Assembly (NCBI RefSeq): GCF_963921235.1 | Contig: NC_086107.1 | Span: 46,438,001 to 46,502,000 of the forward strand | Direction of reading: 5' to 3' | From: Mobula hypostoma | Lineage: Eukaryota | DNA: 64,000 nt | Shown: in pieces, positions 6,638-58,974 of the stretch | How the letters are laid out: each line of letters starts with the position of its first letter | Position numbering within the stretch: the stretch's first letter is position 1 | Translations under genes and position numbers: made by a program | The notes under the pieces: generated by a model | Told to the model about the DNA's origin: nothing | The model's input: only the letters and a program-made list of their open reading frames with translations | Databases searched by the model: none

Positions 6638-6739
6638 AACAAGAACAAAGTAAGCTGACTGGTGGAATTATCTTTGGCATTATCATGCTACTTTGTGTTC
6701 TGGGTTTTGGAATTTGTATCTGGAAGAAAAAATCTAAAG
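6638..6739 (+). CDS. NCR3LG1-like: Transmembrane exon
   Basis: ttttaacag acceptor, 102 nt, phase 1-1, gtaacg donor; EQEQSKLTGGIIFGIIMLLCVLGFGICIWKKKSK is a hydrophobic helix followed by a basic stop-transfer segment. Confidence 0.9.
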
Positions 6740-7085
6740 GTAACGCTTTTCTCGGTTTATAAACGTCAACTAGAGTATGAAAAATAAAATGGTTAATTAT
6801 CTGTTGATAATTTATTAAAATCTATTTGTTATCTGGAGCTTAACTCAAAGTTGAAATTATAGTGATTTCTTAAAATTTAATCAGAATTAGAAGACTTTTT
6901 TCTCTCTTCTACAATATCATCCACTAGTCTTATTATGATTCTCACGGATTAACATTTTCATCACAATTTTCAATTTGGTTTTGAATGAACTATTAACAGG
7001 TTACTGATGCCATCTTAGTGATTTAAACAAAAGTCACTAGTATTCTGATAATTAAACTCTAATTAAATTAGGTAAACCTATCTGA

Positions 7086-7126
7086 AATATTGGAACACAC
7101 ATCAAAGTTGCTGGTGAATATTGGAA
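7086..7126 (+). mobile_element. 21-bp Penelope-terminus micro-insertion between 10-bp direct repeats
   Basis: aatattggaa-cacacatcaaagttgctggtg-aatattggaa; the insert matches the element end at about 63826-63850. Confidence 0.7.
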
Positions 7127-7369
7127 TGTATACATTAATTGTGGACACATCATTTTGTATTTTAAATTCAGACACAATAATCAATAATTACTTTTACTTT
7201 GTTACTTCATAAGCAGTGCCTTGGGGTCAAGGATGACTTACTGCCCTCTGATTTTGTGCTTTCTGAGTTTTGTGGCGCGCCATATTCTTTTGCACTCCAA
7301 ATATTAAAGATTGAACTGCTTTAACCATTTGTAATAAGAAACCCTTTCATTCCAGATATTCACATAGTC

Positions 7370-7750
7370 AATCTCTTCTGGGCTACCTCCAATGCTAGGA
7401 AGTCTTTTTTCAGTCTTCCAGGTGTAGCCTCACCAATTCTTTATATTCTGTAATAATAGTCTGTGTTTCTAAACTTCTTGGTAACAAAGACCGATATGCC
7501 ACTTGCCTTTCTCACTTTTGTTGCACCTGCCTGCTAACTTCATGCTGTTTGTGCTCAGGAACACCTGGATCCCTCTATACTCCCCCAGTTGTAAACTCTC
7601 TCCATTCAAATCAGAGCCCTCCTTTTGATTCCTCTTGTCAAAATGCATGATTTCAGAAGTGCCCACATTAAACATCATTTCCCTTGTTTTCACTCATTTA
7701 CTTAACTTATCCGTCTCCTACTGCTGAGTCCAAACATTCCCATCAGAGAT
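7370..7750 (-). mobile_element. CR1-type LINE RT fragment
   Basis: Minus ORF FNVGTSEIMHFDKRNQK..LNGESLQLGE matches the CR1 RT C-terminal region. Confidence 0.7.
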
Positions 7751-8420
7751 ACAAGAGATTCTGGAGATGCTGAAAACCCAGAGTAACACACACAAAATGC
7801 TGAAGGAACTCAGCTGGTCACACATCAACCATGCAGAAGAATAAACAGCTGATGTTTGGAACAAGAATGACTTATCAGGACTGGAAAGAGAGGGGATAGA
7901 AGCTAGAATAAGTGGGGAAGAGAAGGAATAGAAGCTAGCAGGTGATAAACAAAAGATGCCAGGTGAGGGGGGAAGTTTAGTGGATCAGTGAAGTGTGAAT
8001 CTGGGAGATGGTATGTGGAAAAGGTAAAGAAGAAAAGAAGGATAATGGATCACGGGAGAAGGAGGAGGACGGGCACCAGAGGGAGTTGAGGAGAAGAAAT
8101 GGGATAAGCGAGGAGTCCGATTGGGGAATGGAAGCAAAGAGAAGGAGACGAGGAGAAATTAGTGGAAGTTAGGGAATTCAAGTTCATGTTCTCAGGTTGG
8201 AGACTCCTCCGATGGATATGAGGTGTTGCTCCTCCAACCTTAGACTGGCCTCATTGAGGCAGTAGAGGAGGCCATTAATCAACATGTTGAAATGGGAATG
8301 GGGAGTAGAACTAAAATGGTGGCCACCAGGAAAACCAGCCTGTTGTGGCAGTCAGAACGAACCTCCAATATACATCAGCTCTCATTGATATAGAGGAGGC
8401 CACACTGTGTTTCTCATCAC
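7750..8420 (-). mobile_element. Penelope-like element fragment
   Basis: Similar to 1337-2100 (gagattctggagatgctg, cacacacaaaatgctg, aatgggaatgggagtagaac). Confidence 0.7.
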
Positions 8421-8479
8421 AACATATCTACCTTCATATGTCTACCTTCATATTAAAGACAAACTTGAATAACTCAGTG

Positions 8480-9000
8480 TTCCCTTCATTAAATTATCAG
8501 ATGGTAGATATAAATAACACCCCACTATTTCACATTTCTCTGTTAAGCTTTGGATGAACATTTATTTTGTCTGGTTCTATTTTTTTAAAACAAGACACAG
8601 TACATTCAGCTAATATTGCGTAAATTTAATACAAATTAAATAAAGTCAACATAATGTTGGAAAGTAATCAATAATGGTGATGAAAACATTCAATATTTTA
8701 CTATGCAAATACAATTTTCAATACTTGCTTCCTGTTTACTACACTTGGGTGGAGAAAACCTTCCCACTAAACAGTTATCAAATATTATTTTAGATCTAAT
8801 AAAATACCATTTATAATCTAATTGCAAGCCTTTAGTCTGTTTTATGTATGAAATGCACATAAAAAGTTTTTGGATATCCTTTAAGCTGTTTACACCTATT
8901 TCAAGGGAATATCTCACCACTCAGCAAATGGGATCAAACAGTTCAATATACAAATAACCTCAGCTGAATTATCATCTTCTGTGTGTGAGACTACACAATA
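8480..9000. repeat. Local duplication segment X, copy 1 (paralog of about 15620-16135)
   Basis: Shared sequence such as cacttgggtgg..attattttagatctaataaaataccattta..gcctttagt..gaaatgcacataaa..aaatgggatcaaa. Confidence 0.85.
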
Positions 9001-9660
9001 TTCACCCCTTCAATATGCTATTTTATACATCCAGGATATTTCAAACTGGACACCAGACAGTTATCCATTGGGAGAAGCTGCTGCAGCTTCTAAACTAACC
9101 AATCACAATGGAATCGACTTTCGACAATCAGAATAAGGCTCAACCCCACAGGACACTCCATCCTTCGAAAGTTCCAAATGTGATGATCCAACTCTCAGAC
9201 TAGTATGACTCTCAAGGACTCCTAAGTTATATATAAACCACAAAGGCACAATACTCAGAACTGTAAACCCAGTAGTCACTTCCAGTGTACTATAGTACTC
9301 CATCAGCCCCCCCTGTGCCACAAAAGTCCACCAGCCCCACCCTGGAGTGTAATAGCCAATAAGCTGGACCCCACTTCCTTTTATACATGGACTCTGAGGT
9401 ATGATCTACCAGGTGAGTGATGTTCACCAACCCATCAGGAATGTAGGTGCTGCATTCTTAACCAATAACTGGACAAATGCCACCTTCCCTTGTGATCAGG
9501 TAATCCATCAAAATCAGTTCCTGGGACAGTCTGGTCATGCCATGCTGAGAAAGACTATCATTCAAAATATCCTTCCTTCGTCATAGCTTTCTTACTGACC
9601 AGCATGGGCAAGGTGCTCATCCAGGTAACTGGGGTGGCATATAAATGGCACCACATATCA

Positions 9661-14500: not shown

Positions 14501-14504
14501 GTAG

Positions 14505-16550: not shown

Positions 16551-17270
16551 TAGCATTTCTGCAAATTGCGTAAATGCAGCACTTATTTAGTGTAATAAAA
16601 ATGCAGGAAATATAATTTCTGGACAGAAATTATAGTTCGGTGTTAAAACAAAGAAGTTTTAAGTTCAGATATGGACAGCACTTGATATACTAAAAGAGAG
16701 CATTTAGTATTAACTTGGCTCTATATCAAGAAATAAAATTCTCTATGTGGATATACATTACAAGTAATTATCAAAGCAAGATGTGGAAAGACTTAAAATG
16801 TTAAAATATTTAAAATTTAAATATCCTCTTGAACCAGGGTAGATAATCTCACTCATGCCAACTCTGAGCTGATTCCACACCCAATGGACACTTTCAAGGA
16901 CTATGTAACTCACAATCTCAGTGTTATTTATTTACTTATTTTTTATTTACACAGTGCATCTTTTTTGCACATTAGTTGTTTGTCAGTTTTTGATTGTGCA
17001 TACCTACTGTTTGTCTTCATTCTACTCTGAATGTCTGCAAGAAAACAATTCTCCAGGTAGTATATGATGACATATACAGTATGAACTTTTACAGTAAATT
17101 TACTTTGAACATTTTGTAGTTATTTGCAACAAATACAGAATAGCTCAATGGGGAAAAGTGTGAAAATTCAAAACCTGCACTCTGAATTAAGTGTTGATAC
17201 ATTTTATATATTGTGTGGAAAGCTTAGATTCGTATATATAATTAAATATCTTTTAAACTAGCATCTGTAG

Positions 17271-17354
17271 ATACCAGTAAGTGTGAATCAATGGAAAGAG
17301 GAGATCAAAACTGCGAACTGCTTTTGACCAGTCAGGATCCCCAACTTCCAATAG
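17271..17354 (+). CDS. Candidate cytoplasmic exon (84 nt, DTSKCESMERGDQNCELLLTSQDPQLPI)
   Basis: gcatctgtag acceptor, consensus AG|gtaagt donor, open frame, phase 1-1 compatible with the TM exon. Confidence 0.75.
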
Positions 17355-18582: not shown

Positions 18583-19381
18583 TTTAGATGTTTACTTGCC
18601 AGAAGAGGGTCGCAAAACAAAACGAATGAATTTACAACCAGTCCTTGCCGATACAATCTGTTTATGGACAGAATTGTGTATGGACAGAATTGTGTATGCA
18701 GTATAAAAAATACCAGAACTCATACGGTACTAATACGGTACTGGCAATTCTGAAGGAACACAATACAAACAACATTAGAATCCCACCCACCCTGCATCTT
18801 ATACATAACAGTGAAAAAGGTAAGCGAATACATCTCATCTATGACGTACACACGAGCTGAACTTCCGAACAGAGACTAAACATTTATGTTACGCGGTTAC
18901 ATGCACAATCAGTCCTGGTACAATAAAGTTAGACAAAAGGTACACTTTGGCACAACTTTTACAAGGTATTGCCTGATAGTTAAATTACAGGAAGACTGAC
19001 CTACTTGGAGTGAGGAACTTTGCATGAGCCACGCGATCCAGCGTCGATGCCTTTACTCGTGAAAATCTAAAGCATCCACATGTAAAACATGTCAAATTAC
19101 TGATATTCTTGATTTGCCAACAAGCATAAACGAATTCACATGGATATTGTCAATTAATGCTCACCTTTCCTCACCATGCCCAGTCTCGGGGAGGAAGTCA
19201 ATTCCAACGCCCCACCAGCGTCTTCAGCAGAAAACAAAATGGTCTCCCCACTATCCTGCGCGTGCGTAATGACATCACTGTCTCCATTAAAGGCACAGAC
19301 AGCTATTCCAACATTACCCGGATGGATACCTAAGTACACTTTTAACGATACCGAAGAAGATCCGACAGTCATCCGGTTACA
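18583..19381 (-). repeat. Gypsy 3' LTR, truncated at its distal end
   Basis: On the minus strand starts TGTAAC directly after the PPT GCAGGGGAGAA (plus 19382-19393); lacks about 70 bp present in the other LTR. Confidence 0.85.
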
Positions 19382-20184
19382 TTCTCCCCTGCATTCAAGT
19401 AATCGTCCTCGATTACTCATTCACTACAAAGGTATTTTTAACCTCCTTAACTGCTTCTCTAAAGAGAACTGAACTGAGACTAGCCAGTATCTCAGACACT
19501 GCTGCTGGACTTATGGAGACCTCATCAAGGACTGACCTTGGTTCGTGATGTGGGTTAGGGTGCTGTCCAGCATTTACTTGTTTACTCCTGCAGAGTGCTG
19601 CTACAAGAGGGCTTCCGACCTCTGCCCCTGCATTAGTTGTCCTCAGCTCCCCGTCTCAGTTCCAGAAGGTGTCATATTTTCGGAAGCTATGCTGTCTAGG
19701 CAAGGGTCAAGACTCTGTGCACCCTGTTCTGACATACCTTTTATCGCAATAATACCATTTTCTGAACCCTCAGAATCTGATTCATGCCCCAGGGGTGAGC
19801 TGGCCTGGGTTACTGGAGTTTGCAGTCTCCTTCGGGTAGCTGGAGCAGGATGGTTCTCACAGGGCCTGATGTCTACCCTGTTCACCCTCTTGCTAGGCCC
19901 ACCCTCCCAAGGTTCCACAGTGTACGTGTTGCCCAGTACCTCTACCACCCTGTAGACAATTGTGTTCCAAGCATCCTGAATCTTATTACAGCCTAATGTT
20001 CTGTTCCTCAAGTAAATCAGTGCATCCACATCAACTCTGGGACAGTACACTTTGTCCTCCTGTCAGGCAATGCGTTCTGCCGCCTTCTGTTCAGAGTATT
20101 CTTTTGCTCGGGCATGTGCATCCCTCAGTCGGCTCTGGTGTACAGCTAATCAGTCATGCTTCCGGTCCACCGTTTGTTCTTGCC

Positions 20185-21060
20185 CTAGCAGAGCATCCAC
20201 GGGCAAGTGGGGATCCACCACAAACAACGGATAGTAAGGTGAATACCCGGTGGTTGCGTGAGGTGTTGCATTCTATGCGTACACCAACTCAGTAGATGTT
20301 CTGACCATCTGTGCTTCTTTTCTGGAGGCAACGTACGCAACAGATCATGCATTGCCCTGTTGAAACGCTCGCACTGTGCATTTCCAGTAGGATGATGAGT
20401 TGTGGTACGGCTTTTCTTTACCCCGTGTATTTTGCAAAGCTCAGCTATGACCTGACTTTCGAACTTACAGACCTGGTCAGAATGCAATCTCTCAGGGACA
20501 CCGTACTTCATGAACCATTCCCTCAAGAGCACCCTTGCTGTGGTATCCGCCTTTTGATCCAAAGTCGGAAATGCTTGGGTGAAGTTACTGAAAACGTCCG
20601 TGACCACTAAGACATTCTCACGCCCGTCAGTTGCCGGCTCCAACACAGTGAAATCTATAGCTACAACTTCAAGCAGCCTAGAAGCCAGAAGTGACTTCAT
20701 GGGCGAGTGAATCCTAGGCTGCGGCATCTTAGTAAGTACACAACATGGACAATTTTTGACCCACCGTGCCACATCCTCGTGTATGCCCACATAAAAACAT
20801 TGACATCTCAACAACTGCAGAGTACGTTCTATACCTTGATGGCCCATAGAGTCATGTACATTCTCTAACACTTTGTTCCTCAAGCTGTTAGGTACCAGAA
20901 GCTGGTAACACTCCCCAAGCTTCTCATCCTCAACTACCCCACACAGTAACCCTTTACGCTCCCTGATACTGTCCCAGTGCCTGAACAGAGACAAAACGGG
21001 TTTAGGCAGAGTTTTACGCTCCTGGCCACTCAGCTTTCTTTTCTGATCCCATAAGTCTCT
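20185..21060 (-). pseudogene. Gypsy integrase (zinc-binding + DDE core), frameshifted
   Basis: HHCC and DDE motifs in ORF 20185-21189; the 5' part is interrupted by the hAT MITE. Confidence 0.85.
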
Positions 21061-21065
21061 TAGGA

Positions 21066-22043
21066 CAGGGGTCCCCAACCTTTTTTGCACCGCGGACCGG
21101 TTTATTATTATTATTGACAACATTCTTGCGGACCGGCCAAACCGGGGTGGGGGGGGGTGTTGGCATGGTGGTAGGTTGCCAACGGACAAGAGTAGCCGTC
21201 AAATACATTGTGTTTACCCCGAGAAGACTACCATGACCATGCACGGGCACCAGTGTGCGCATGCGTATACGTGCCGATTTTTTTCTACAAATCGTTTTTG
21301 GTGATTCTGTACGGGGGTTGGATGTTAATCACGACCAGAATATAGGTGATAAGTCATCTATGACTAATACACTCAATTTCATTTCTAAAGGGGTTTATCT
21401 AAAGAACCTAATATGAAACACACAGTACATATTTTCCTCACATGAATATAGTGATAAGTCAATTATAAGTCACTTATAAGTCAAAAGCATCATAACATTC
21501 TAAGTAATGTTTGGATATTAAACATACAGCACAAATTTCCCCCGTATGAACATATAAAATCGTTGCAACACACCAATATCGCTGAATCAGCGGGAGCCCT
21601 GGGCTTGTTTCCCTGCAACAAGACGATTCTATTGAGGGGTGATGGGAGACAGCGATACTCGAAGGGGGTTCCTTATGTCCAGTCTATTCCACAATTTAGT
21701 TTTCGTTGCATTCATTGCAGAGATATGTTGGAAATGGAAGCAACGTTTTCAGTGCTTTCGTGGCTATCTCAGGATATTCAGCCTTGACTTTGATCCGGAA
21801 TGCCAGCAGAGATGTTATGTCAAACATACTTTTCAGCCCGCCGTCATCTGTAAGCTCGAGGAATTGATCTCTTTCCTGTGCTGACATGGATGACGCGCGG
21901 GTAATGACCTTGCGTGCATTCAAGCTCAACAGTGGGTGTGACAGGGAATGAGGAAAGGTGCTGCTGACTCATATCGCCAAATCATATCGTTTCCTTGTGG
22001 CCCGGTTGCACATGCTTTGCAGCCCGGTGGTTGGGGACCGCTG
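21066..22043. mobile_element. Non-autonomous hAT (Charlie-like) element inserted in Gypsy pol
   Basis: TIRs caggggtccccaacc / ggttggggaccgctg; perfect 8-bp TSD TCTTAGGA (21058-21065, 22044-22051); transposase C-terminal remnant KAEYPEIATKALKTLLPFPT on the minus strand. Confidence 0.92.
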
Positions 22044-23374: not shown

Positions 23375-23870
23375 ATAACCATATATAACCAGGTAACAAT
23401 TACAGCATGGAAACAGGCCATCTCAGCCCTTCTCGTCCATGCCGAACTCTTACTCTCACCTAGTCCCACCGTCCTGCACTCAGCCCATAACCCTCCATTC
23501 CTTTCCTGTCCATATAGCTGTCCAATTTAACTTTAAATGACAACATTGAACCTGCCTCAACCACTTCTGCTGGAAGCTCGTTCCACACAGCTACCACTCT
23601 CTGAGTAAAGAAGTTCCCTCTCATGTTATCCCTAAACTTCTGCCCTTTAACTCTCAACTCATGTCCTCTTGTTTGAATCTCCCCCACTCTCAATGGAAAA
23701 AGCCTGTCCACATCAACTCTATCCATCCCCCTCATAATTTTAAATACCTTTATCAAGTCCCCCCTCAACCTTCTACGTTCCAAAGAATAAAGACCCAACT
23801 TATTCAACCTTTCTTTGTAAATTAGGTGATGAAACCCAGGTAACATTCTAGTAAATCTTCTCTGTACTCA
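23375..23870 (-). mobile_element. CR1-type LINE 3' fragment inserted in Gypsy gag
   Basis: ORF LYSLERRRLRGDLI..NFFTQRVVAVWNELP; near-identical to the 3' end of the 36226-37258 copy. Confidence 0.9.
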
Positions 23871-25290: not shown

Positions 25291-25293
25291 AAT

Positions 25294-41163: not shown

Positions 41164-41241
41164 AGGAAACCCAGCCAAAGCCTGATGAAGATAAAGGAGA
41201 GCAGCAGGAGCTGCCTAATCAGGATTCAGGAGAAAATAAAG
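41164..41241 (+). CDS. E78 copy
   Basis: Intact AG/GT, open (EETQPKPDEDKGEQQELPNQDSGENK). Confidence 0.6.
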
Positions 41242-42757: not shown

Positions 42758-42835
42758 AGGAAACCCAGCCAAAGCCTGATGAAGATAAAGGAGAGCAGCA
42801 GGAGCTGCCTGATCAGGATTCAGAAGAAAATAAAG
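42758..42835 (+). CDS. E78 copy
   Basis: Intact AG/GT, open. Confidence 0.55.
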
Positions 42836-44352
42836 GTAATATGTTTGTTGGAACACACAGAGAATTGTTGAAAAATTCATGATTTTTGCTTGCATTGCAG
42901 TTTCTGTAGATTACAGACGATTATCTTGAAGTTAATTCTGTGAATACTGTCACCATTATTCAGTAACCAGCACACCCATCAGATTGTATAAATATTCAAC
43001 ATTCCTACCAGCACTGAGTTTACATGTTATTTGAGAGCTTTGTACACCATGGATGTAAACATGCAAAATCTGTCTCATCATAACAATCCATGTTCACTAT
43101 ATCCCAGGTTCCTCACATATCCTTTCTTAGATTTCAGATCTGAATGCACAAAGCACAGTAATAAAACCAGCCAAAGCTGGAGATAAGTTAAGGCACAAAT
43201 TATATGAAAAGAAAGCAGAAAAATTGCACGCATTTACAGTATTTTGTCTCTTTCTTTTTCTTGCAATTGCATAATACCTAAAGTAGTTGAAGCGACAATT
43301 AATTCTTGTTCCTCTACTGTGGCCTGCAAATTCTTTATACCAAGCAATTTTCTGAAGATATTGCCTGCCTAATGCCTGTAAAATCCCTGGAAATTCAGAA
43401 CTCCATTCCATAGCAAATTTGAATAATCTACATTGCACCAGATTATCTGAAGATGATTCCTTGAATACGATCCAGTCCACTGATTAGAAGCAGTCATGTA
43501 AATAATCCTCATCCTGCCTTCATCATATAATCATGGCGCTTGCTACTGGGGCAGCACTCTTTATTCTCTGACTATACTCTGCAATACAACAGAAATGCAT
43601 GAAATCACAACAGACAAACAGCTGTTTAGAAAGTGTTAGAAATGTCATGCCTTTCTCAATGTAGTCATCGATACAAATTAGCCGTTTTCTTCCAGCTTCT
43701 GTAAATTGCATGTGATTGTCATCTATTAACTCCTGTGAATGTTATCAGCATAATTCATTTGCCATCACACACTGGGAATATTTCCCTAAATTCCTCAAAG
43801 AAAATATCCTTATATTGATGATAGTTTTGAATTGGAACAGAAGAAGAAATTGAACCAAATGGACATGCAAATGAGTTAAGGAATGAAAGTAAGGAAAATC
43901 TGGAAAAAGTGCCGGAATATTGTTTAGAATTGCAAGGCTTCTGTTGCAAACAAAGTGAGATTCACTTTTCATTAATCTCTTCAAAACTACTGCAATCATT
44001 TCCTGCTTAATATCTGGGAAATTACTGAAGAAACTGTATACATTCCATCTACCAACCTCTCTGGGGTAAAGTAGATTGCTGAAATTGGCAACAGGAATTG
44101 AGGCACGCATCTCATTTATACAGTCCTGCATTTCATAGACAGGACCATGCCAAATTAGTGTAACTGGACTAGAATTAGTCCACAATTCCTACATTTGTAA
44201 AGTATCTGGTATTATGCGTTGGAACCGACACATTCAAATTAGGTTGTGGCTACACGTTTTTACGTGTGGTAAAATTCTGGCTATGAATCACTGTTCTTTC
44301 ATTTTTACGTTGCTTGAGTTGATGGAGACACATTTCCTTTATTTCGATTCAG

Positions 44353-44430
44353 AGGAAACCCAGCCAAAACCTGATGACGATAAAGGAGAGCAGCAGGAGC
44401 CGCCTAATCAGGATTCAGGAGAAAATAAAG
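44353..44430 (+). CDS. E78 copy (type B)
   Basis: Intact AG/GT, open; identical to the 50639 copy. Confidence 0.55.
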
Positions 44431-45937
44431 GTAATATGTTTGTTGGAACACACATAGAATTGTTGAAAAATTCATGATTTTTGCTTGCATTGCAGTTTCT
44501 GTAGATTACAGACGATTATCTTGAAGTTAATTCTGTGAATACTGTCACCATTATTCAGTAACCAGCACACCCATCAGATTGTATAAATATTCAACATTCC
44601 TACCAGCACTAAGTTTACATGTTATTTGAGAGCTTTGCACACCATGGATGTAAACATGCAAAATCTGTCTCATCATAACAATCCATGTTCACTATATCCC
44701 AGGTTCCTCACATATCCTTTCTTAGATTTCAGATCCGAATGCACAAAGCACAGTAATAAAACCAGCCAAAGCTGGAGATAAGTTAAGACACAGATTATAT
44801 GAAAAGAAAGCAGAAAAATTGCACGCATTTACAGTATTTTGTCTGCTTCTTTTTCTTGCAATTGCATAATACCTAATGTAATTGAAGCGACAATTAATTC
44901 TTGTTCCTCTACTGTGGCCTGCAAATTCTTTATTCCAAGCAATTATCTGAAGATATTGCCTGCTTAAAGCCTGGAGAATTCAGAACTCCATTCCGTAGCA
45001 AAGTTGAATAATCTACATTGCTCCAGATTATCTAAAGATGATTCCTTGAATATGGTCCAGTCCACTGATTAAAAGCAGTCATGTAAATAATCCTCATCCT
45101 GCCTTGATCATATATTCATAGCGCTTGCTACTGGGGCAGCACTCTTTATTCTCTGACTATACTCTGCAATACAACAGAAATGCATGAAATCACAACAGAC
45201 AAACAGCTGTTTACAAAGTGTTAGAAATGTCATGCCTCTGTCAATGTTGTCATCGATACAAATTAGCTGTTTTCTTCCAGCTTCTGTAAATTGCATGTGA
45301 TTGTCATCTCTTAACTCCTGTGAATGTTAACAGCATAATTCACTTGCCATCACTCACTGGGAATATTTCCCTAAATTCCTCAAAGAAAATATCCTTATAT
45401 TGATGATAGTTGTGAATTGGAACAGAAGAAGAAATTGAACCAAATGGACATACAAATGAGTTAAGGGATGAAAGTAAGGAAAATCTGGAAAAAGTGCCGG
45501 AATATTGTTTAGAATTGCAAGGCTTCTGTTGCAAACAAAGTGAGATTCACTTTTCATTAATCTCTTCAAAATTTCTGCAAACATTTCCTGCTTAATATCT
45601 GGGAAATTACTGAAGAAACTGTATACATTCCATCTGCCAACCTCTCTGGGGTAAAGTAGATTCCTGCAATTTGCAACAGGAATTGAGGCACGCGTCTCAT
45701 TTATACAGTCCTGCATTTCATAGACAGGACCATGCCAAATTAGTGTAACTAGACTAGAATTAGTCCACAATTCCTACATTTGTAAAGTATCTGGTATTTT
45801 GCGTTGGAACCGACACATTCAAATTAGGTTGTGGCTACACGTTTTTACGTGTGGTAAAATTCTGGCTATGAATCACTGTTCTTTCACTTTTACATTGCTT
45901 GAGTTGATGGAGACACATTTCCTTTATTTCGATTCAG

Positions 45938-46015
45938 TGGATACCCAGGCAAATCCTGATGAAGATAAAAGCGAACAGGAGGAGAAGCCTAATCAGGTTT
46001 CAGGAGAAAACAAAG
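45938..46015 (+). CDS. E78 copy (type C)
   Basis: Intact AG/GT, open (DTQANPDEDKSEQEEKPNQVSGENK). Confidence 0.55.
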
Positions 46016-47522
46016 GTAATATGTTTGTTGGGACAAACAAAGAATTGTTGAAAAATTCATGATTTTTGCTTGCATTGCAGTTTCTGTAGATTACAGATGA
46101 TTATCTTGAAGTTAATTCTGTGAATAGTGTCACCATTATTCAGTAACCAGCACACCCATCAGATTGTATAAGTATTCAACATTCCTACCAGCACTAAGTT
46201 TACATGTTATTTGAGAGCTTTGCACACCATGGATGTAAACATGCAAAATCTGTCTCATCATAGCAATCCATGTTCACTCTCTCACAGGTTCCTCACATAT
46301 CCTTTCTTAGATTTCAGATCCGAATGCACAAAGCACAGTAAGAAAACCAGCCAAAGCTGGAGATAAGTTAAGACACAGATTATATGAAAAGAAAGCAGAA
46401 AAATTGCACGCATTTACAGTATTTTGTCTGTTTCTTTTTCTTGCAATTGCATAATACCTAAAGTAATTGATGCGACAATTAATTGTTGTTCCTCTACTGT
46501 GGCCTGCAAATTCTTTAACCCAAGCAATTTTCTAAAGATATTGCCTGCTTAACACCTGGAGAATTCAGAACTCCATTCCATAGCAAAATTGAATAATCTA
46601 CATTGCACTAGATTATCTGAAGATGATTCCTTGAATCTGGTCCAGTCCACTGATTAAAAGCAGTCATGTAAATAATCCTCATCCTGCCTTGATCATATAT
46701 TCATGGCGCTTGCTACTGGGGCAGCACTCTTTAGTCTCTGACTATACTCTGCAATACAACAGAAATGCATGAAATCACAACAGACAAACAGCTGTTTAGA
46801 AAGTGTTAGAAATGTCAGGCCTCTGTCAATGCAGTCATCGATACAAATTAGCGGTTTTCTTCCAGCTTCTGTAAATTGCATGTGTTTGTCATCTCTTAAC
46901 TCCTGTGAATGTTATCAGCATAATTCACTTGCCATCACTCACTGGGAATATTTCCCTAAATTCCTCAATGAAAATATCCTTATATTGATGATAGTTGTGA
47001 ATTGGAACAGAAGAAGAAATTGAACCAAATGGACATACAAATGAGTTAAGGGATGAAAGTAAGGAAAATCTGGAAAAAGTGCCGGAATATTGTTTAGAAT
47101 TGCAAGGCTTCTGTTGCAAACAAAGTGAGATTCACTTTTCATTAATCTCTTCAAAATTTCTGCAAACATTTCCTGCTTAATATCTGGGAAATTACTGAAG
47201 AAACTGTATACATTCCATCTGCCAACCTCTCTGGGGTAAAGTAGATTCCTGCAATTTGCAACAGGAATTGAGGCACGCGTCTCATTTATACAGTCCTGCA
47301 TTTCATAGACAGGACCATGCCAAATTAGTGTAACTAGACTAGAATTAGTCCACAATTCCTACATTTGTAAAGTATCTGGTATTTTGCGTTGGAACCGACA
47401 CATTCAAATTAGGTTGTGGCTACACGTTTTTACGTGTGGTAAAATTCTGGCTATGAATCACTGTTCTTTCACTTTTACATTGCTTGAGTTGATGGAGACA
47501 CATTTCCTTTATTTCGATTCAG

Positions 47523-47600
47523 TGGATACCCAGGCAAATCCTGATGAAGATAAAAGCGAACAGGAGGAGAAGCCTAATCAGGTTTCAGGAGAAAACAAAG
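47523..47600 (+). CDS. E78 copy (type C)
   Basis: Intact AG/GT, open. Confidence 0.55.
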
Positions 47601-50600
47601 GTAATATGTTTGTTGGGACAAACAAAGAATTGTTGAAAAATTCATGATTTTTGCTTGCATTGCAGTTTCTGTAGATTACAGATGATTATCTTGAAGTTAA
47701 TTCTGTGAATAGTGTCACCATTATTCAGTAACCAGCACACCCATCAGATTGTATAAGTATTCAACATTCCTACCAGCACTAAGTTTACATGTTATTTGAG
47801 AGCTTTGCACACCATGGATGTAAACATGCAAAATCTGTCTCATCATAGCAATCCATGTTCACTCTCTCACAGGTTCCTCACATATCCTTTCTTAGATTTC
47901 AGATCCGAATGCACAAAGCACAGTAAGAAAACCAGCCAAAGCTGGAGATAAGTTAAGACACAGATTATATGAAAAGAAAGCAGAAAAATTGCACGCATTT
48001 ACAGTATTTTGTCTGCTTATTTTTCTTGCAATTGCATAATACCTAAAGTAATTGATGCGACAATTAATTGTTGTTCCTCTACTGTGGCCTGCAAATTCTT
48101 TAACCCAAGCAATTTTCTAAAGATATTGCCTGCTTAACACCTGGAGAATTCAGAACTCCATTCCATAGCAAAATTGAATAATCTACATTGCACTAGATTA
48201 TCTGAAGATGATTCCTTGAATCTGGTCCAGTCCACTGATTAAAAGCAGTCATGTAAATAATCCTCATCCTGCCTTGATCATATATTCATGGCGCTTGCTA
48301 CTGGGGCAGCACTCTTTAGTCTCTGACTATACTCTGCAATACAACAGAAATGCATGAAATCACAACAGACAAACAGCTGTTTAGAAAGTGTTAGAAATGT
48401 CAGGCCTCTGTCAATGCAGTCATCGATACAAATTAGCGGTTTTCTTCCAGCTTCTGTAAATTGCATGTGTTTGTCATCTCTTAACTCCTGTGAATGTTAT
48501 CAGCATAATTCACTTGCCATCACACACTGGGAATATTTCCCTAAATTCCTCAATGAAAATATCCTTATATTGATGATATTTTTGAATTGGATCAGAAGAA
48601 GAAATTGAACCAAATGGACATGCAAATGAGTTAAGGGATGAAAGTAAGGAAAATCCGGAAAAATGTGCCGGAATATTGTTCAGAATTGCAAGACTTCTTT
48701 TGCAAACAAAGTGAGATTCACTTTTCATTAATCCCTTCAAAATTTCAGCAGACATTGCCTGCTTAATGTCTGGGAAATTACTGAAGATACTGTATAAATT
48801 CCATCTGCCAACCTCTCTGGGGTAAAGTAGATTGCTGAAATTTGCAACAGGAATTGAGGCACGTGTCTCTTTTCTACAGTCCTGCATTTCATAGACATGA
48901 CCATGCCAAATTAGTGTTACTGGACTAGAATTAGTCCACAATTCCTACATTTGTAAAGTATCTGATATTTTGCTTTGGAACCGACACATTCAAATTCAGT
49001 TGTGGCTACACGTTTTTATATGTGGTAAAATGCTGGCTATCAACCACTGTTCTGTCACTTTTACTGATGAAGATAAAAGAGAACGGGAGGAGCCGCCTAA
49101 TCAGGATTCAGGAGAAAATAAAGGTAATATGTTTGTTGGGACACAGAGAATTTTTGAAAATGTCATGATTTTTGCTTGCACTGCAGTTTCTGTAGATTAC
49201 AGACGATTATCTTGAAGTTAATTCTGTGAATACTGTCACCATTATTCAGTAACCAGCACACCCATCAGATTGTATAAATATTCAACATTCCTACCAGCAC
49301 TGAGTTTACATGTTATTTGAGAGCTTTGTACACCATGGATGTAAACATGCAAAATCTGTCTCATCATAACAATCCATGTTCACTATATCCCAGGTTCCTC
49401 ACATATCCTTTCTTAGATTTCAGATCCGAATGCACAAAGCACAGTAATAAAACCAGCCAAAGCTGGAGATAAGTTAAGGCACAAATTATATGAAAAGAAA
49501 GCAGAAAAATTGCACGCATTTACAGTATTTTGTCTCTTTCTTTTTCTTGCAATTGCATAATACCTAAAGTAGTTGAAGCGACAATTAATTCTTGTTCCTC
49601 TACTGTGGCCTGCAAATTCTTTATACCAAGCAATTTTCTGAAGATATTGCCTGCCTAATGCCTGTAAAATCCCTGGAAATTCAGAACTCCATTCCATAGC
49701 AAATTTGAATAATCTACATTGCACCAGATTATCTGAAGATGATTCCTTGAATACGATCCAGTCCACTGATTAGAAGCAGTCATGTAAATAATCCTCATCC
49801 TGCCTTCATCATATAATCATGGCGCTTGCTACTGGGGCAGCACTCTTTATTCTCTGACTATACTCTGCAATACAACAGAAATGCATGAAATCACAACAGA
49901 CAAACAGCTGTTTAGAAAGTGTTAGAAATGTCATGCCTTTCTCAATGTAGTCATCGATACAAATTAGCCGTTTTCTTCCAGCTTCTGTAAATTGCATGTG
50001 ATTGTCATCTATTAACTCCTGTGAATGTTATCAGCATAATTCACTTGCCATCACACACTGGGAATATTTCCCTAAATTCCTCAAAGAAAATATCCTTATA
50101 TTGATGATAGTTTTGAATTGGAACAGAAGAAGAAATTGAACCAAATGGACATGCAAATGAGTTAAGGAATGAAAGTAAGGAAAATCTGGAAAAAGTGCCG
50201 GAATATTGTTTAGAATTGCAAGGCTTCTGTTGCAAACAAAGTGAGATTCACTTTTCATTAATCTCTTCAAAACTACTGCAATCATTTCCTGCTTAATATC
50301 TGGGAAATTACTGAAGAAACTGTATACATTCCATCTACCAACCTCTCTGGGGCAATGTAGATTACTGAAATTTGCAACAGGAATTGAGGCACGCATCTCA
50401 TTTATACAGTCCTGCATTTCATAGACAGGACCATGCCAAATTAGTGTAACTGGACTAGAATTAGTCCACAATTCCTACATTTGTAAAGTATCTGGTATTA
50501 TGCGTTGGAACCGACACATTCAAATTAGGTTGTGGCTACACGTTTTTACGTGTGGTAAAATTCTGGCTATGAATCACTGTTCTTTCATTTTTACGTTGCT

Positions 50601-50638
50601 TGAGTTGATGGAGACACATTTCCTTTATTTCGATTCAG

Positions 50639-50716
50639 AGGAAACCCAGCCAAAACCTGATGACGATAAAGGAGAGCAGCAGGAGCCGCCTAATCAGGAT
50701 TCAGGAGAAAATAAAG
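50639..50716 (+). CDS. E78 copy (type B)
   Basis: Intact AG/GT, open. Confidence 0.55.
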
Positions 50717-52223
50717 GTAATATGTTTGTTGGAACACACATAGAATTGTTGAAAAATTCATGATTTTTGCTTGCATTGCAGTTTCTGTAGATTACAGACG
50801 ATTATCTTGAAGTTAATTCTGTGAATACTGTCACCATTATTCAGTAACCAGCACACCCATCAGATTGTATAAATATTCAACATTCCTACCAGCACTAAGT
50901 TTACATGTTATTTGAGAGCTTTGCACACCATGGATGTAAACATGCAAAATCTGTCTCATCATAACAATCCATGTTCACTATATCCCAGGTTCCTCACATA
51001 TCCTTTCTTAGATTTCAGATCCGAATGCACAAAGCACAGTAATAAAACCAGCCAAAGCTGGAGATAAGTTAAGACACAGATTATATGAAAAGAAAGCAGA
51101 AAAATTGCACGCATTTACAGTATTTTGTCTGCTTCTTTTTCTTGCAATTGCATAATACCTAATGTAATTGAAGCGACAATTAATTCTTGTTCCTCTACTG
51201 TGGCCTGCAAATTCTTTATTCCAAGCAATTATCTGAAGATATTGCCTGCTTAAAGCCTGGAGAATTCAGAACTCCATTCCGTAGCAAAGTTGAATAATCT
51301 ACATTGCTCCAGATTATCTAAAGATGATTCCTTGAATATGGTCCAGTCCACTGATTAAAAGCAGTCATGTAAATAATCCTCATCCTGCCTTGATCATATA
51401 TTCATAGCGCTTGCTACTGGGGCAGCACTCTTTATTCTCTGACTATACTCTGCAATACAACAGAAATGCATGAAATCACAACAGACAAACAGCTGTTTAG
51501 AAAGTGTTAGAAATGTCATGCCTCTGTCAATGTTGTCATCGATACAAATTAGCGGTTTTCTTCCAGCTTCTGTAAATTGCATGTGTTTGTCATCTCTTAA
51601 CTCCTGTGAATGTTATCAGCATAATTCACTTGCCATCACTCACTGGGAATATTTCCCTAAATTCCTCAATGAAAATATCCTTATATTGATGATAGTTGTG
51701 AATTGGAACAGAAGAAGAAATTGAACCAAATGGACATACAAATGAGTTAAGGGATGAAAGTAAGGAAAATCTGGAAAAAGTGCCGGAATATTGTTTAGAA
51801 TTGCAAGGCTTCTGTTGCAAACAAAGTGAGATTCACTTTTCATTAATCTCTTCAAAATTTCTGCAAACATTTCCTGCTTAATATCTGGGAAATTACTGAA
51901 GAAACTGTATACATTACATCTGCCAACCTCTCTGGGGTAAAGTAGATTCCTGCAATTTGCAACAGGAATTGAGGCACGCGTCTCATTTATACAGTCCTGC
52001 ATTTCATAGACAGGACCATGCCAAATTAGTGTAACTAGACTAGAATTAGTCCACAATTCCTACATTTGTAAAGTATCTGGTATTTTGCGTTGGAACCGAC
52101 ACATTCAAATTAGGTTGTGGATACACGTTTTTACGTGTGGTAAAATTCTGGCTATGAATCACTGTTCTTTCACTTTTACATTGCTTGAGTTGATGGAGAC
52201 ACATTTCCTTTATTTCGATTCAG

Positions 52224-52301
52224 TGGATACCCAGGCAAATCCTGATGAAGATAAAAGCGAACAGGAGGAGAAGCCTAATCAGGTTTCAGGAGAAAACAAA
52301 G
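52224..52301 (+). CDS. E78 copy (type C)
   Basis: Intact AG/GT, open. Confidence 0.55.
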
Positions 52302-54124
52302 GTAATATGTTTGTTGGGACAAACAAAGAATTGTTGAAAAATTCATGATTTTTGCTTGCATTGCAGTTTCTGTAGATTACAGATGATTATCTTAAAGTTA
52401 ATTCTGTGAATAGTGTCACCATTATTCAGTAACCAGCACACCCATCAGATTGTATAAGTATTCAACATTCCTACCAGCACTAAGTTTACATGTTATTTGA
52501 GAGCTTTGCACACCATGGATGTAAACATGCAAAATCTGTCTCATCATAGCAATCCATGTTCACTCTCTCACAGGTTCCTCACATATCCTTTCTTAGATTT
52601 CAGATCCGAATGCACAAAGCACAGTAAGAAAACCAGCCAAAGCTGGAGATAAGTTAAGGCACAAATTTTATGAAAAGAAAGCAGAAAAAATGCGCGCATT
52701 TACAGTATTTTGTCTGCTTATTTTTCTTGCAATTGCATAATACCTAAAGTAATTGATGCGACAATTAATTCTTGTTCCTCTACTGTGGCCTGCAAATTCT
52801 TTAACCCAAGCAATTTTCTAAAGATATTGCCTGCTTAACACCTGGAGAATTCAGAACTCCATTCCATAGCAAAATTGAATAATCTACATTGCACTAGATT
52901 ATCTGAAGATGATTCCTTGAATCTGGTCCAGTCCACTGATTAAAAGCAGTCATGTAAATAATCCTCATCCTGCCTTGATCATATATTCATGGCGCTTGCT
53001 ACTGGGGCAGCACTCTTTAGTCTCTGACTATACTCTGCAATACAACAGAAATGCATGAAATCACAACAGACAAACAGCTGTTTAGAAAGTGTTAGAAATG
53101 TCAGGCCTCTGTCAATGCAGTCATCGATACAAATTAGCGGTTTTCTTCCAGCTTCTGTAAATTGCATGTGTTTGTCATCTCTTAACTCCTGTGAATGTTA
53201 TCAGCATAATTCACTTGCCATCACACACTGGGAATATTTCCCTAAATTCCTCAATGAAAATATCCTTATATTGATGATATTTTTGAATTGGATCAGAAGA
53301 AGAAATTGAACCAAATGGACATGCAAATGAGTTAAGGGATGAAAGTAAGGAAAATCCGGAAAAATGTGCCGGAATATTGTTCAGAATTGCAAGACTTCTT
53401 TTGCAAACAAAGTGAGATTCACTTTTCATTAATCCCTTCAAAATTTCAGCAGACATTGCCTGCTTAATGTCTGGGAAATTACTGAAGATACTGTATAAAT
53501 TCCATCTGCCAACCTCTCTGGGGTAAAGTAGATTGCTGAAATTTGCAACAGGAATTGAGGCACGTGTCTCTTTTCTACAGTCCTGCATTTCATAGACATG
53601 ACCATGCCAAATTAGTGTTACTGGACTAGAATTAGTCCACAATTCCTACATTTGTAAAGTATCTGATATTTTGCTTTGGAACCGACACATTCAAATTCAG
53701 TTGTGGCTACACGTTTTTATATGTGGTAAAATGCTGGCTATCAACCACTGTTCTGTCACTTTTACTGATGAAGATAAAAGAGAACGGGAGGAGCCGCCTA
53801 ATCAGGATTCAGGAGAAAATAAAGGTAATATGTTTGTTGGGACACAGAGAATTTTTGAAAATGTCATGATTTTTGCTTGCACTGCAGTTTCTGTAGATTA
53901 CAGATGATTATCTTGTAGTTAATTCTGTGAATAGTGTTACCATTATTCAGTAACCAGCACACCCATCAGATTGTATAAATATTCAACTTTCCTACCAGCA
54001 CTGAGTTAACATGTTATTTGAGAGCTTTGTACACCATGGATGTAAACATGCAAAATCTGTCTCATCATAACAATCCATGTTCACTATATCACAGGTTCCT
54101 CACATATCCTTTCTTTGATTTCAG

Positions 54125-54169
54125 ATCCGAATGCACAAAGCACAATAAGAAAACCAGCCAATGCTGCAG
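54125..54169 (+). CDS. E45 copy (intact)
   Basis: AG and CAG|gtaagt, 45 nt, open. Confidence 0.55.
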
Positions 54170-55327
54170 GTAAGTTAAGGCACAAATTTTATGAAAAGAA
54201 AGCAGAAAAAATGCACGGATTTACAGTATTTTGTCTGTTTCTTTTTCTTGCAATTGCATAATACCTAAAGTAGTTGAAGCGACAATTAATTGTTGTTCCT
54301 CTACTGTGGCCTGCAATTTCTTTATTCCAAGCAATTTTCTGAAGATATTGCCTGCTTAACGCCTGGAAAATTCAGAATTCCATTCCATAGCAAGGTTGAA
54401 TAATCGACATTACACCAGATTATCTGAAGATCATTCCTTGAATACGGTCCAGTCCACTGATTAAAAGCAGTCATGTAAATAATCCTCACCCTGCCTTGAT
54501 CATATATTCATAGCGCTTGCTACTGGGGCAGCACTCTTTATTCTCTGACTATACTCTGCAATACAACAGAAATGCATGAAATCACAACAGACAAACAGCT
54601 GTTTAGAAAGTGTTAGAAATGTCATGCCTCTGTCAATGTTGTCATCGATACAAATTAGCGGTTTTCTTCCAGTTTCTGTCAATTGCTTGTGATCGTCATC
54701 TCTTAATTCCAGTGAATGTAATCAGCATAATTCACTTACCATCACACACTGGGAATATTTCCCTAAATTCCTCAAAGAAAATATCCTCATATTGATGACA
54801 GTTTCGAATGGAACAGAAGAAGAAATTGAACCATATGCACATGCAAATGAGCTAAGGATTTAAAGTAAGGAAAATCTTGAAAAAGCTGCGGGAATTTTTT
54901 TTTACAATTGCAAGGCTTCTGTTGCAAACAAAGTGAGATTCACTCTTCACTAATCCCTTAAAAATTCCTGCAGACATTGCCTGCTTAACGTCTGGGAAAT
55001 TACTGAAGATACTGTATACATTCCATCTGCCAGTTTCTCTGGGGCAAAGTAGATTGATGAAATTTGCAACAGGACTTGAGTCACGTGTCTCTATTCTACA
55101 GATTCGCATTTCATAGATAGGACCATGCCTAATTAGTGTAACTGGACTCGAATTATTCTACAATTCCTCTATTTTAAAAGTATCTGGAATTTTCCTTTGG
55201 AACCAAAACATTCAAGTTCAGTTGTTGCTATGTTTTTACGTGTGGTTAAATTCTGGCTTTGAATCTCTCTTGTTTCATTTTTACATTGCCTGAATTAATA
55301 TAAACACATTTCCTTTATTTGATTCAG

Positions 55328-55405
55328 AGGTCACCCAGGCAAAGCCTGATGAACCTGAAATGTAAGAAGAGCAGCCGAGTAATCAGAGTTCAGGAGAAAA
55401 TGAAG
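55328..55405 (+). pseudogene. Dead E78 copy
   Basis: In-frame TAA, and the donor GT is changed to AT. Confidence 0.7.
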
Positions 55406-56009
55406 ATAATATGTTTGTTGGGACACACAGAGAACTGTTGAAAACTTCATGAAGTTTTGCTTGCATTGCAGTTTCTGTAGATTACAGATGATTATCTTGT
55501 AGTTAATTCTGTGAATAGTGTCACCATTATTCAGTAACCAGCACAGCTAGAAGATTGTTTAAATATTCAACTCTCCCACCAGCACTGAGTTTACATGTTA
55601 TTTGGGAACATTCATGCCTCTATTCCAATAGCAGTGTTGAACAATCTATATTCCACCAGATTATCTGAAGATGATTCCTTGAAGATGGTCTAGCCGACTA
55701 ATTGAAAGCAGTCATGACTCTATTCCAATAGTAACGTTGAACCATCTGTACTACTGCTGGTATGTTCAACTTTGCTACTGGACTGGAGGCATCAGTCTGT
55801 TCTGTCCATCTCTGGGAACTGTGGATGGAACATGACAAATTGGTGTTACCACCACTATCAGACCAGAGTTATTCCCCAATTCTTCAAATACAAAACTGTG
55901 TAGAATTTTGTTTTGTAACCTGCACATTCAAGGCATAAAACAACAAATCCTGAAGCCTTCCTTATCATTTTGGGGGATTTTAACCTGGCCTCCTTGAAGA
56001 CGTCTCTAA

Positions 56010-57290
56010 ATAATTATTACCAATAAATCACTTGCCACCCCATGTCCACAATGACCTGGACCCACTGCAATTTGCCTATTGCTGCAATAGATCTATGGTA
56101 GATGCAATCTCATTGGTTCTTCATGTGGCCTTGGATCAGCTGGAGAATACAAATACTTGTGTCAAGATGCTGTTTATTAACTACAGCTCTGTGTTTAACA
56201 CAATTGTTACTACAGTTCTGATGAAAAAGCTCCAGAACTTGAGCCTCTGTTCCTCCCTCTGCAACTGGATCCATGACTTCCTAACAGAGTGACCACAGTC
56301 TGTGCAGGTCAGAAACAACATCTCCACTTCGCTGACAATCAACACTGGCGCATCTCGGTGATGCATGTTTAATTCACTGCTCTACTCTCTCTCTATGCCA
56401 TTGACTGTGTGGCTAGGTACAGCACAAATGTCATCTATAAATTTGATGATGATACAAGTATTGTTGGCAGAATTTCAGATGGTAACCCAAGGGTGTACAG
56501 GAGTGAGATACATCAGCTAGTTGAGGGCTGTTGTAGGAACAACCTTGCACTCAGTGTCAGTAAGCTGGATGTGGACTTCAGAAAAGGTAAGACTAGGGAA
56601 CACACACCAGTCCTCATAGAGGGATCAGAAGCGAAAAGAGTGAGAAGATTCAAGTTCCTGGGTGTCAATATCTCTGAAGATCGATCTCTGACCCAACATA
56701 TCAATGCAGATACAAAGAAGGCACGACTGCAACTATAATTAATTAGGGGTTTGAGGAGATTTGGTATGTCACTAACCACGCTCGCAAATTTCTACATATG
56801 TACCATGGAGAGCATTCTAACTCACTGCATCACTGTCTGGTTTGGGTGGTGGGCTACTGCACAGGATCGAAATGAACTGAAGAGAATTGTAAACTAGGTT
56901 AGCTCCATCATGGGCACTAGCCTCCATAGTATCCATGATATCTTCAAGGAGCAGTACCACAAAAAAGTCAGCATCCACCATTAAGGACCCGTATCACCCA
57001 GTTCATGGCTTATTCTCATTGCCACCATCAGGAAGGAGTACAGAATTGAGAAGGCAAACACTCAAATATTCAGGATCAGCTTCTTCCCCTCTGCCATCTG
57101 ATGGACATTGAAACTATCAACACTACCTCACTGCTTTTTTTATTTCAATTTTTGCACTACTTATTTAACTATTTTATATATATGTAAATACTGTACTTAC
57201 TGTAATTAATGGCTTTTTCTATTATTATGTATTGCATTGCAAATACAACATATTTCATGACTAATGCTGGTGATATTAAACCTGATTCTA
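56010..57290 (+). mobile_element. Rex/L2-type LINE RT fragment + 3' UTR
   Basis: DLDPLQFAY..RSMVDAISLVLH..MLFINYSSVFNTI and YKFDDDTSIVGRI. Confidence 0.9.
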
Positions 57291-57849
57291 ATCCTGAAGC
57301 TCAGCTGTTGCCACATGACTTTTCCATTTCTGAGTCTGTGGCTACGAATCATTATTGTTCCAATTCACATTGCGGAGCTGGCAGAGACACATTTTCGACT
57401 GTGTGAGCAGCCTAGGAATGCTAATTCTGAAGTCTAACAAACATTTGACTCGAATCAGATACTAGATCAGTAGAAAGTTTTATGTTTGATGTGCTGTGTC
57501 TGAATGAAAGAAAGGTCTGGGTAATTAGTTCAACAGTGAGATGCAGATCTTCAGGCAAGTTAATGATTGACTTTTGTGTTGTCAAATTGGTGGCGGAGTC
57601 TGCAAGTATACATGACTCGTAATCAAGCTTCACTGAAAGTGCTGCTACATCTTGTCTCAAGCTGTGTTGTCATTTTACACCTGAGAGATGTGAAATCCCT
57701 TACATCCCCTTTTCTGAATACAGTGCCAAATTCGGATGTCACCCCAACAAAGCCTAAAGAACATGAAAGGGAAGAAAAGAAGTTTCATGAAATTTGCTTG
57801 CATTGCAGTTTCTGTAGATTCCACATGATTATCTTCTAGTTAATTCCTG

Positions 57850-58059
57850 TAACCTCTAATCACAGCGCTAAGCGGTATTGCATCCGTATTGTACTGTCTC
57901 AGTACTTTTTTATTTGTGTTCTGTAGCACTTTCTTTATTCGCTGTTATTTTGTAAATAACACTATTCTTTGCATTTCTGGTCAGATGCTAAATGCATTTC
58001 GTTGGCTTTGTATCTGTACTCGGTACAATGACAATAAAGTTGAATCTAATCTAATCTAA
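57850..58059 (+). mobile_element. LINE 3' end with (TCTAA)n tail
   Basis: aataaagttgaatctaatctaatctaa; same family as 37261-37475. Confidence 0.75.
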
Positions 58060-58896
58060 ATGCTGTCAATGCTATTCAGTAACTTGCACACCCAGTGGGT
58101 TGTTTGAGCATTCAACTTTCCTACCAGCACTTGAGTTTACATGTTATTTGAGAGCATTGTACATCATGGATGTAAACATGTAAAGTCTGTGTCACCATCT
58201 TTCTTAATCCCTGGAAAATTTCTGCAGCTATTGGCTGCTTAACCCTTGGAAAATTCTTGGGAGATACTGTACACCTTTCACCTAGTGGAATGTAGATTGT
58301 TCAACTTTGCTACTGGGATTGAGGCATGAGTCTCTTCTGTACATCTCTGTGCATCGTAGATGGGAACAAGCCAAATTAATGTCATCACCATTATCAGACT
58401 TGAACTATTCCCCAATTCCTTAAAATCAATAATTTGTGGAATTTTGATTTGGAACCCATTTATTCAAGGTCTGTTCCTGCCACGTGATTTCATCTTCAGA
58501 GGATCTGTGACTATCAACCACAGCATTATTGTTTCAATTTTATATTCTTTAAATTGACGGAGACACATTTTGGCCAGAAGCCCAGGAATGTTCATTTTGA
58601 AGTCTACCAAGCATTTGGCTTGCATCAGAAGCTGGATCAGTGGAAAGATTTATGTCCAATGTGCTGTGAAGGACATCTAACTGAGGTAAAGAGTGGGTAA
58701 TTTGTGCCACAGTGAGATGCAGGTCTTCCGGCAAATTAATGTTTCCCTACTGTTTTGTCAAAATGACCAAGGATTCTGCAGGAATTCAAGACTCATCATC
58801 CAGCAGTTCAGAATGGTTTGCCACATTTTATCTGAGGTGTGTTGACATTTTACATCTGAGAGAACTTCCTTTGTTTGAATACAACACCCAATTCAG

Positions 58897-58974
58897 ATGT
58901 CACCCCAGCAAAGCATGGTGAACATGAAAAGGAAGAAGAGAAGTTAGTTAATCAAAATACAGGAGAGAGTGAAG
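58897..58974 (+). CDS. Diverged but intact E78-family exon (DVTPAKHGEHEKEEEKLVNQNTGESE)
   Basis: attcag acceptor, exactly 78 nt, AAG|gtaata donor, open frame, although the flanks are strongly diverged from the array. Confidence 0.65.

Follow-up and report, generated by a model that had tools for sequence, protein, structure and literature searches.

B7-H6 (NCR3LG1) is the ligand of the natural killer (NK) cell receptor NKp30, and the two proteins are thought to have co-evolved since sharks. Human B7-H6 possesses an ectodomain of IgV and IgC1, an adjoining transmembrane (TM) helix, and a tail that consists of one gag-like sequence, with motifs of the ITIM/SH2/SH3 type (ITIM, immunoreceptor tyrosine-based inhibitory motif; SH, Src homology) and no micro-exon array; little is understood, whatever the species, of what B7-H6 does within the cell that bears it. 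Tails assembled from tiny exons are known from chicken BG, a representative of the butyrophilin/B7 superfamily: they comprise 13–36 exons of 21 nucleotides (nt), the number of which varies between paralogues, and splice variants occur (PMC4046983). These exons of 21 (sometimes 24) nt encode heptads of an alpha-helical coiled coil, only a V domain is located outside the cell, and no Ig-fold domain is present in the tail. Mammalian butyrophilins (BTN/BTNL) are composed of a V + C ectodomain, a TM helix, a few very short cytoplasmic exons and a globular intracellular domain of the B30.2/PRY-SPRY type (PMC4046983). Here, we describe the gene LOC134353700 of the ray Mobula hypostoma, the bulk of which is located in a 64-kb window, i.e., the whole stretch of DNA analyzed (64,000 nt; RefSeq assembly GCF_963921235.1, contig NC_086107.1, positions 46,438,001–46,502,000). 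It encodes a B7-H6/NCR3LG1-like type I membrane protein, the charged tail of which is, with high confidence, formed from spliced symmetric micro-exons together with an exon for an Ig-fold domain. All coordinates refer to this window, and all exons are located on its plus strand.

The ray gene shares with chicken BG a B7-superfamily ectodomain, a single TM helix and a long, presumably cytoplasmic tail of many tiny amplified symmetric exons, the number of which varies by relative and isoform. The principle of a micro-exon tail is hence not new in the B7 superfamily, correcting an initial annotation of the locus, made from the sequence alone, which knew of no such tail in B7-family proteins. The ray gene differs from BG by the size of its exons (78 and 45 nt), a repeat unit of 1.59 kb, the charged non-heptad composition, a V + C1 ectodomain instead of V only, and the Ig-fold tail domain. 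It resembles human B7-H6 in the IgV + IgC1 ectodomain with the TM helix next to it, and the butyrophilins in the succession of V + C ectodomain, TM helix, very short exons and globular domain. Compared to the butyrophilins, however, the globular domain of the ray is an Ig-like beta-sandwich, and amplification has raised the number of short exons to about 17 in the longest isoform. Pfam revealed no PRY/SPRY domain in the full isoform X1, and no Pfam family matches the ray tail. A published description of this tail was not found in a literature search, although a 2012 shark B7H6 paper and a 2015 review may still contain one.

The IgV exon (3620–3958, 339 nt; Pfam V-set, E 8e-14 on window 3625–3969) is covered by a piece of an RNA contig (3618–3955) with 0 mismatches and a GT..AG joint to 5847, i.e., the start of the IgC1 exon (5847–6143, 297 nt; Pfam C1-set, E 6e-11). 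The latter is linked via a further GT..AG joint (6143|6638) to the TM exon (6638–6739, 102 nt), encoding a hydrophobic stretch of 23 residues (LTGGIIFGIIMLLCVLGFGICIW) directly followed by KKKSK. These exons, as every exon past the leader, are of phase 1-1. The leader exon and the last coding exon (DAVLK*) were searched for in the window and not found. Using an M. birostris relative ~90 % identical to the window as query, the top three matches among solved structures were B7-H6 (3PV6, 4ZSO, 6YJP; E 5e-22 across V + C1), with CD276 (E 1e-13) and TAPBPR (E 1e-12) matching more weakly. This ranking suggests the ectodomain to be most like that of human B7-H6/NCR3LG1. UrIg and UrIg2, elasmobranch genes of the V-C1 type, were ruled out as candidates, possessing several extracellular C1 domains and another layout (PMC12227049).

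Automatic models of the gene, without a proper name, already exist in RefSeq. A database search with the product of a 426-nt tail exon retrieved only proteins of cartilaginous fish, and a subsequent search retrieved XP_062918044.1 of M. hypostoma. The four isoforms XP_062918043-46 (LOC134353700) represent the same gene, since each of their tail segments equals an exon of the window. They carry the labels 'dextranase-like' or 'uncharacterized protein', and neither the array, nor the dead exon types, nor the tail domain are described there.

Downstream of the TM exon, three types of short exons with nominal lengths of 78, 45 and 63 nt (e78, e45, e63) recur in tandem units. Splicing of these exons was assessed with RNA data, where four runs from one study contain the V, C1 and TM exons. 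A contig of 1,168 nt from RNA run X1 (depth 13.7, 0 mismatches) comprises V (contig positions 186–523), C1 (524–821) and TM (822–925) with GT..AG joints, followed by e78 of unit 1 from position 1019 onwards, e45 of unit 1 (1095–1138) and then e78 of unit 2, thereby passing over the 64-nt segment in between. The contig was recovered separately on window 3550–9549 and on 27410–33409, with the same length and depth. The 93 nt between the end of TM (925) and the first e78 (1019) correspond to the length of a juxtamembrane linker exon (17262–17354, 93 nt, phase 1-1) with AG/GT flanks, which encodes ASVDTSKCESMERGDQNCELLLTSQDPQLPI and is 100 % identical to the RefSeq proteins by tblastn. Across the RNA contigs, GT..AG joints were observed at 27484|27788, 27832|29007, 29084|29384 and 31023|32984. 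The last of these is contained in a 596-nt contig leading from e45 of unit 3 (31023) to the 426-nt exon (32984–33409), then to an e45 and finally to the e78 at 41164. The e45 after the 426-nt exon fits best to the copy at 37699, whereas its alignment to the copy of unit 3 has 3 mismatches; of the e78 at 41164, only the exon start was seen (AGGAA plus a loose end). The reading frame is open throughout the chain of exons. Thus, the micro-exons splice into the TM-bearing transcript of LOC134353700, the very junctions on which the initial annotation had made its proposal depend. Its view that they join the TM exon holds for in-frame splicing downstream of TM but not for a direct join, as the linker lies between. 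Neither the linker nor the 426-nt exon, both of phase 1-1 and both belonging to the tail, had been included in that annotation.

The four RefSeq isoforms X1–X4 (776, 761, 638 and 631 residues) decompose exactly into exons of the window and differ by exon skipping. Isoform X1, the longest one, consists past the ectodomain of TM, linker, three e78-e45 pairs, the 426-nt exon, the e45 at 37699, seven directly joined e78 of the young part of the array, the e45 at 54125 and the last exon (DAVLK*), amounting to 10 e78 and 5 e45 exons. Isoform X2 equals X1 without the e45 at 27788. In X3, the e78 at 42758 is joined to a degenerate copy at 55328, the stop of which ends the protein, and in X4 the same e78 is joined to the last exon. 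Together with the M. birostris relative, which has 8 instead of 10 e78 exons, these isoforms bear out the proposal that tail length varies by splicing and copy number.

The array is built from units of 1,585–1,595 bp, as determined from k-mer offsets and blastn, agreeing with the ~1.59 kb originally estimated; Tandem Repeats Finder (period limit 500) did not detect it. An older block of three units (27307–32066) is ~87 % identical to the reference unit and is followed by a partial unit (37469–38127) and a young block of ~9.6 units (40380–55604; 91–100 % identity); remnants of the array extend to 58198. Since repeat offsets of 4701 and 6286 bp were also observed among the k-mer offsets, blocks of three and four units have apparently been duplicated together. 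A partial 78-nt-like segment at 57735–57782 (DVTPTKPKEHEREEKK..) and the unit-intron remnants following it (57784–58198) indicate that the array formerly reached further downstream and has since decayed.

The used exons of the older block (e78 27407–27484, e45 27788–27832, e78 29007–29084, e45 29384–29428, e78 30602–30679 and e45 30979–31023) are documented by RNA joints and by their exact match to isoform X1, and the 45-nt e45 of the partial unit (37699–37743) occupies its place in all four isoforms. The young block contributes to the models seven e78 of 78 nt each (starting at 41164, 42758, 44353, 45938, 47523, 50639 and 52224) and one e45 (54125–54169), both according to the decomposition of the RefSeq isoforms. 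Left unused in this block, in line with their exon states, are eight e45 with AT instead of GT donors, the e78 at 49064 and 53765, which are truncated at the 5' end and have lost their acceptor, and all e63. The degenerate e78 at 55328–55405, the frame of which is interrupted by a stop and the donor of which reads AT, serves as alternative last coding exon, its product EVTQAKPDEPEM* forming the C-terminus of X3. Concerning e78, AG acceptor and GT donor are conserved, and 10 full-length copies in the array have open frames. A diverged copy at 58897–58974, likewise with intact AG/GT and an open frame, represents the 11th, so that the predicted number of 11 intact copies was recovered. This copy is used in none of the four RefSeq isoforms; its sequence words are present in RNA run X2, which also covers introns at low depth and so offers no evidence of splicing. 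The e45 type retains a GT donor in 5 of 13 copies (27788, 29384, 30979, 37699 and 54125), while the eight AT-donor copies are confined to the young block. Of the exon types in the young block, only the 78-nt exons are still spliceable.

The 426-nt exon (32984–33409, phase 1-1), joined on both sides in the 596-nt RNA contig, encodes a domain of 142 residues. AlphaFold2 modelling with an alignment of 24 sequences predicted an all-beta structure at high confidence (predicted local distance difference test, pLDDT, 91.1; predicted template modelling score, pTM, 0.85), whereas the single-sequence model was poor (pLDDT 57). Foldseek matches in the PDB are Ig domains of the V-like type (TCR V, MOG, MPZL1, Nav beta subunits; probability 1.0, TM-score 0.45–0.56), and the matching AlphaFold-DB clusters include Ig-like domain proteins; Pfam yielded no match for the domain at E <= 1. 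The canonical B-F disulfide is absent, with LOC134353700 and most members having Trp where two database members have Cys (LQC.VT). According to the structural model, the tail thus carries an Ig-fold beta-sandwich without the canonical disulfide. The best AlphaFold-DB cluster match is A0A1L8GI71 (residues 66–216; E 3e-9, TM-score 0.68, 23 % identity), which we take from its accession series to be a Xenopus laevis protein; next in rank are entries of reptile series and one of a Callorhinchus series. The origin of the domain may predate the cartilaginous fish.

Outside the Ig-fold domain, the tail of isoform X1 comprises 376 residues with 28 % D+E, 16 % K+R, 6.6 % hydrophobic residues and 8.5 % proline at a net charge of about −46, the 78-nt exons being acidic and the 45-nt exons basic. 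Since this composition is rich in charge and poor in hydrophobic residues, this part is probably disordered and cannot form a heptad coiled coil of the BG type, from which it also differs by its 78/45-nt exons. The charged tail proposed initially is thus retained, but it is not purely disordered, since the Ig-fold domain is embedded in it. Given a signal peptide, and with KKKSK adjoining the only TM helix, the tail together with its Ig-fold domain should be cytoplasmic.

The initial annotation had further assumed that each unit provides three in-frame micro-exons of 78, 45 and 63 nt with proper AG/GT signals, any subset of which can be spliced. Some copies of each of the three types are indeed flanked by AG and GT-like signals, and the third type (VSNGTDEEIEPNGHANELRDE) is present in the same-species paralogue model XP_062919169.1, marking it as a real ancestral exon of the family. 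In LOC134353700, however, 10 of 13 copies of the third type are 64 nt long, which shifts the frame so that phase 1 runs into stops; the AG acceptor is also missing from two of these, and only the copies at 31659 and 40635 have 63 nt and are open. In the RNA, an e45 is joined directly to the e78 that follows it or to the 426-nt exon, so that even the open copy at 31659 is left out. The third type is skipped in every RNA contig and model, and its copies in the older block (starting at 28475, 30070 and 31659) are unused. In none of the four RefSeq isoforms are 63/64-nt segments, AT-donor e45 or truncated e78 used. The choice of exons in the isoforms therefore agrees with the sequence states, i.e., the lost GT donors of the 45-nt type and the frameshifted third type, and the exon states predict the models. 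The initial annotation thus overstated the third exon and the donors of the 45-nt type, and a free combination of all three is extremely improbable. The third type is dead in LOC134353700 and out of frame in most units, and the cassette in use consists of two exon types (78 + 45 nt). Because the paralogue model uses the third type, the three-exon cassette is ancestral, its third member having died in LOC134353700. A placement of the tail exons including the Ig-fold domain outside the cell or in secreted proteins, via isoforms skipping TM, or their assignment to a different downstream gene, is very unlikely as well. Cytoplasmic tails do not usually carry an Ig-fold domain, and the symmetric TM exon could be skipped in frame. 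In the 1,168-nt contig, however, C1 is followed by the TM exon and only then by the tail exons, and TM precedes the domain in all RefSeq isoforms of this gene and in all homologues read in other species. Moreover, most members are without the canonical Ig disulfide, as expected in a reducing compartment.

More weight has to be given to the possibility that the repeats are a transcribed and spliced but functionally neutral filler, tolerated as array because the exons are symmetric, with only ectodomain, linker and Ig-fold domain being of importance. The ratio of non-synonymous to synonymous differences (pN/pS) among distinct e78 copies is ~0.8, which leaves little constraint on the residues they encode; the donors of e45, the frames of e63 and the truncation of some e78 copies bear signs of decay; and the repeat sequences vary between orders of cartilaginous fish. 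Nevertheless, all 10 full-length e78 copies used by the models have kept open frame, AG and GT despite a nucleotide divergence of 15–25 %, and acid-rich repeated tails recur from six-gill shark to rays, suggesting selection on composition and length, even if there is none on the sequence. On balance, neutral filler appears rather unlikely. Between neighbouring units, the divergence of the 78-nt exon is 4–6 times that of the remaining unit (e.g., 13/78 versus 39/1507 differences; Fisher p 5e-7), which affects synonymous as well as non-synonymous sites; for this pattern, patchy gene conversion is a better-fitting candidate than classic positive selection. Two types of e78 (EETQPKPDE.. and VDTQANPDE..) occur in near-identical intron backgrounds (45938–46015 and other copies). 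Apart from the pN/pS ratio, several further points count against our interpretation of a B7-H6-like protein with a spliced micro-exon tail: the e78-to-e78 joints of the young block are taken from the M. birostris model and from RefSeq models of automatic origin rather than from reads, leader and last exon lie beyond the window, the cytoplasmic location of the tail derives from topology rules only, and assembly of near-identical repeats may affect the unit count.

The array probably grew by unequal crossing-over, including the duplication of three and four units at a time, and each gain, loss or skipping of an exon stays in frame, since all exons are symmetric. As best guess, the resulting tail could be a charged spacer or scaffold of adjustable length, on which the juxtamembrane motif and the Ig-fold domain are displayed to partners in the cytoplasm, possibly in parallel to the micro-exon tails of chicken BG, which couple to the cytoskeleton.

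The layout of signal peptide, V, C1, TM and charged-repeat tail with Ig-fold domain is shared by proteins of Callorhinchus, Heterodontus, Heptranchias, Scyliorhinus, Stegostoma, Rhinoraja, Hemitrygon and both Mobula species, which are labelled 'uncharacterized' or bear chance names. The 142-residue domain is present in one to seven copies per protein (three in Callorhinchus, seven in Heterodontus). At least three further paralogues exist in M. hypostoma, one of which has eleven isoforms in steps of 26 residues, i.e., the size of one 78-nt exon. A close paralogue is strongly expressed in RNA run X2 (contig depth 862; 3–10 mismatches to V and C1 of the window and another C1-TM junction) and matches the 'tapasin-related protein-like' models XP_062918031-42. 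Isoforms of these models end in EVTQAKPDEPEM and DAVLK, as do those of LOC134353700, so that neighbouring paralogues have matching 3' exons or share them.

The locus contains further elements besides the exons in use. A decayed second copy of the linker (32079–32159; 58 % identity by tblastn) with an in-frame stop and without its 3' part is located between older block and 426-nt exon and is skipped by the joint 31023|32984. The intron between linker exon and array harbours an insertion resembling an LTR (long terminal repeat) retrotransposon (18583–27146), with direct repeats of ~1.8 kb (18583–20366 and 25364–27146; 93.2 % identical) that enclose minus-strand open reading frames of the integrase/reverse transcriptase/gag type (20185–23374). 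In three stretches just outside exons (4550–5150, 7750–7950 and 32810–33009), the summed contig depth reached hundreds to tens of thousands, contributed by many short contigs, each loose at both ends. They probably represent fragments of short or long interspersed nuclear elements (SINE/LINE) that are transcribed widely and do not belong to LOC134353700.

The presumed inner part of B7-H6-like proteins in rays and sharks is therewith recognized as large, structured by an Ig-fold domain and rapidly remodelled by expansion, decay and skipping within an exon array. Following chicken BG, it provides a second, independent case of a B7-superfamily tail derived from amplified micro-exons. At this one locus, donors have changed from GT to AT, frames have shifted by 1 nt and exons have been truncated at the 5' end, and it thus represents a clean natural system for the growth and death of symmetric-exon arrays; in addition, the misleading database names 'dextranase-like', 'IWS1 homolog' and 'tapasin-related' are corrected. 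Tentatively, and with somewhat less than even confidence, one may speculate that the B7-H6-like proteins of cartilaginous fish form an undescribed class of immune-surface proteins, in which one to seven cytoplasmic, cysteine-poor Ig-fold copies are embedded in polyampholyte repeats of variable length, encoded by exon arrays, with 78-nt exons kept diverse on purpose, their divergence being 4–6 times that of their introns. Such a tail would serve inside the cell as a tunable scaffold or platform for signalling; it would have persisted for >400 million years and may also exist in amphibians.

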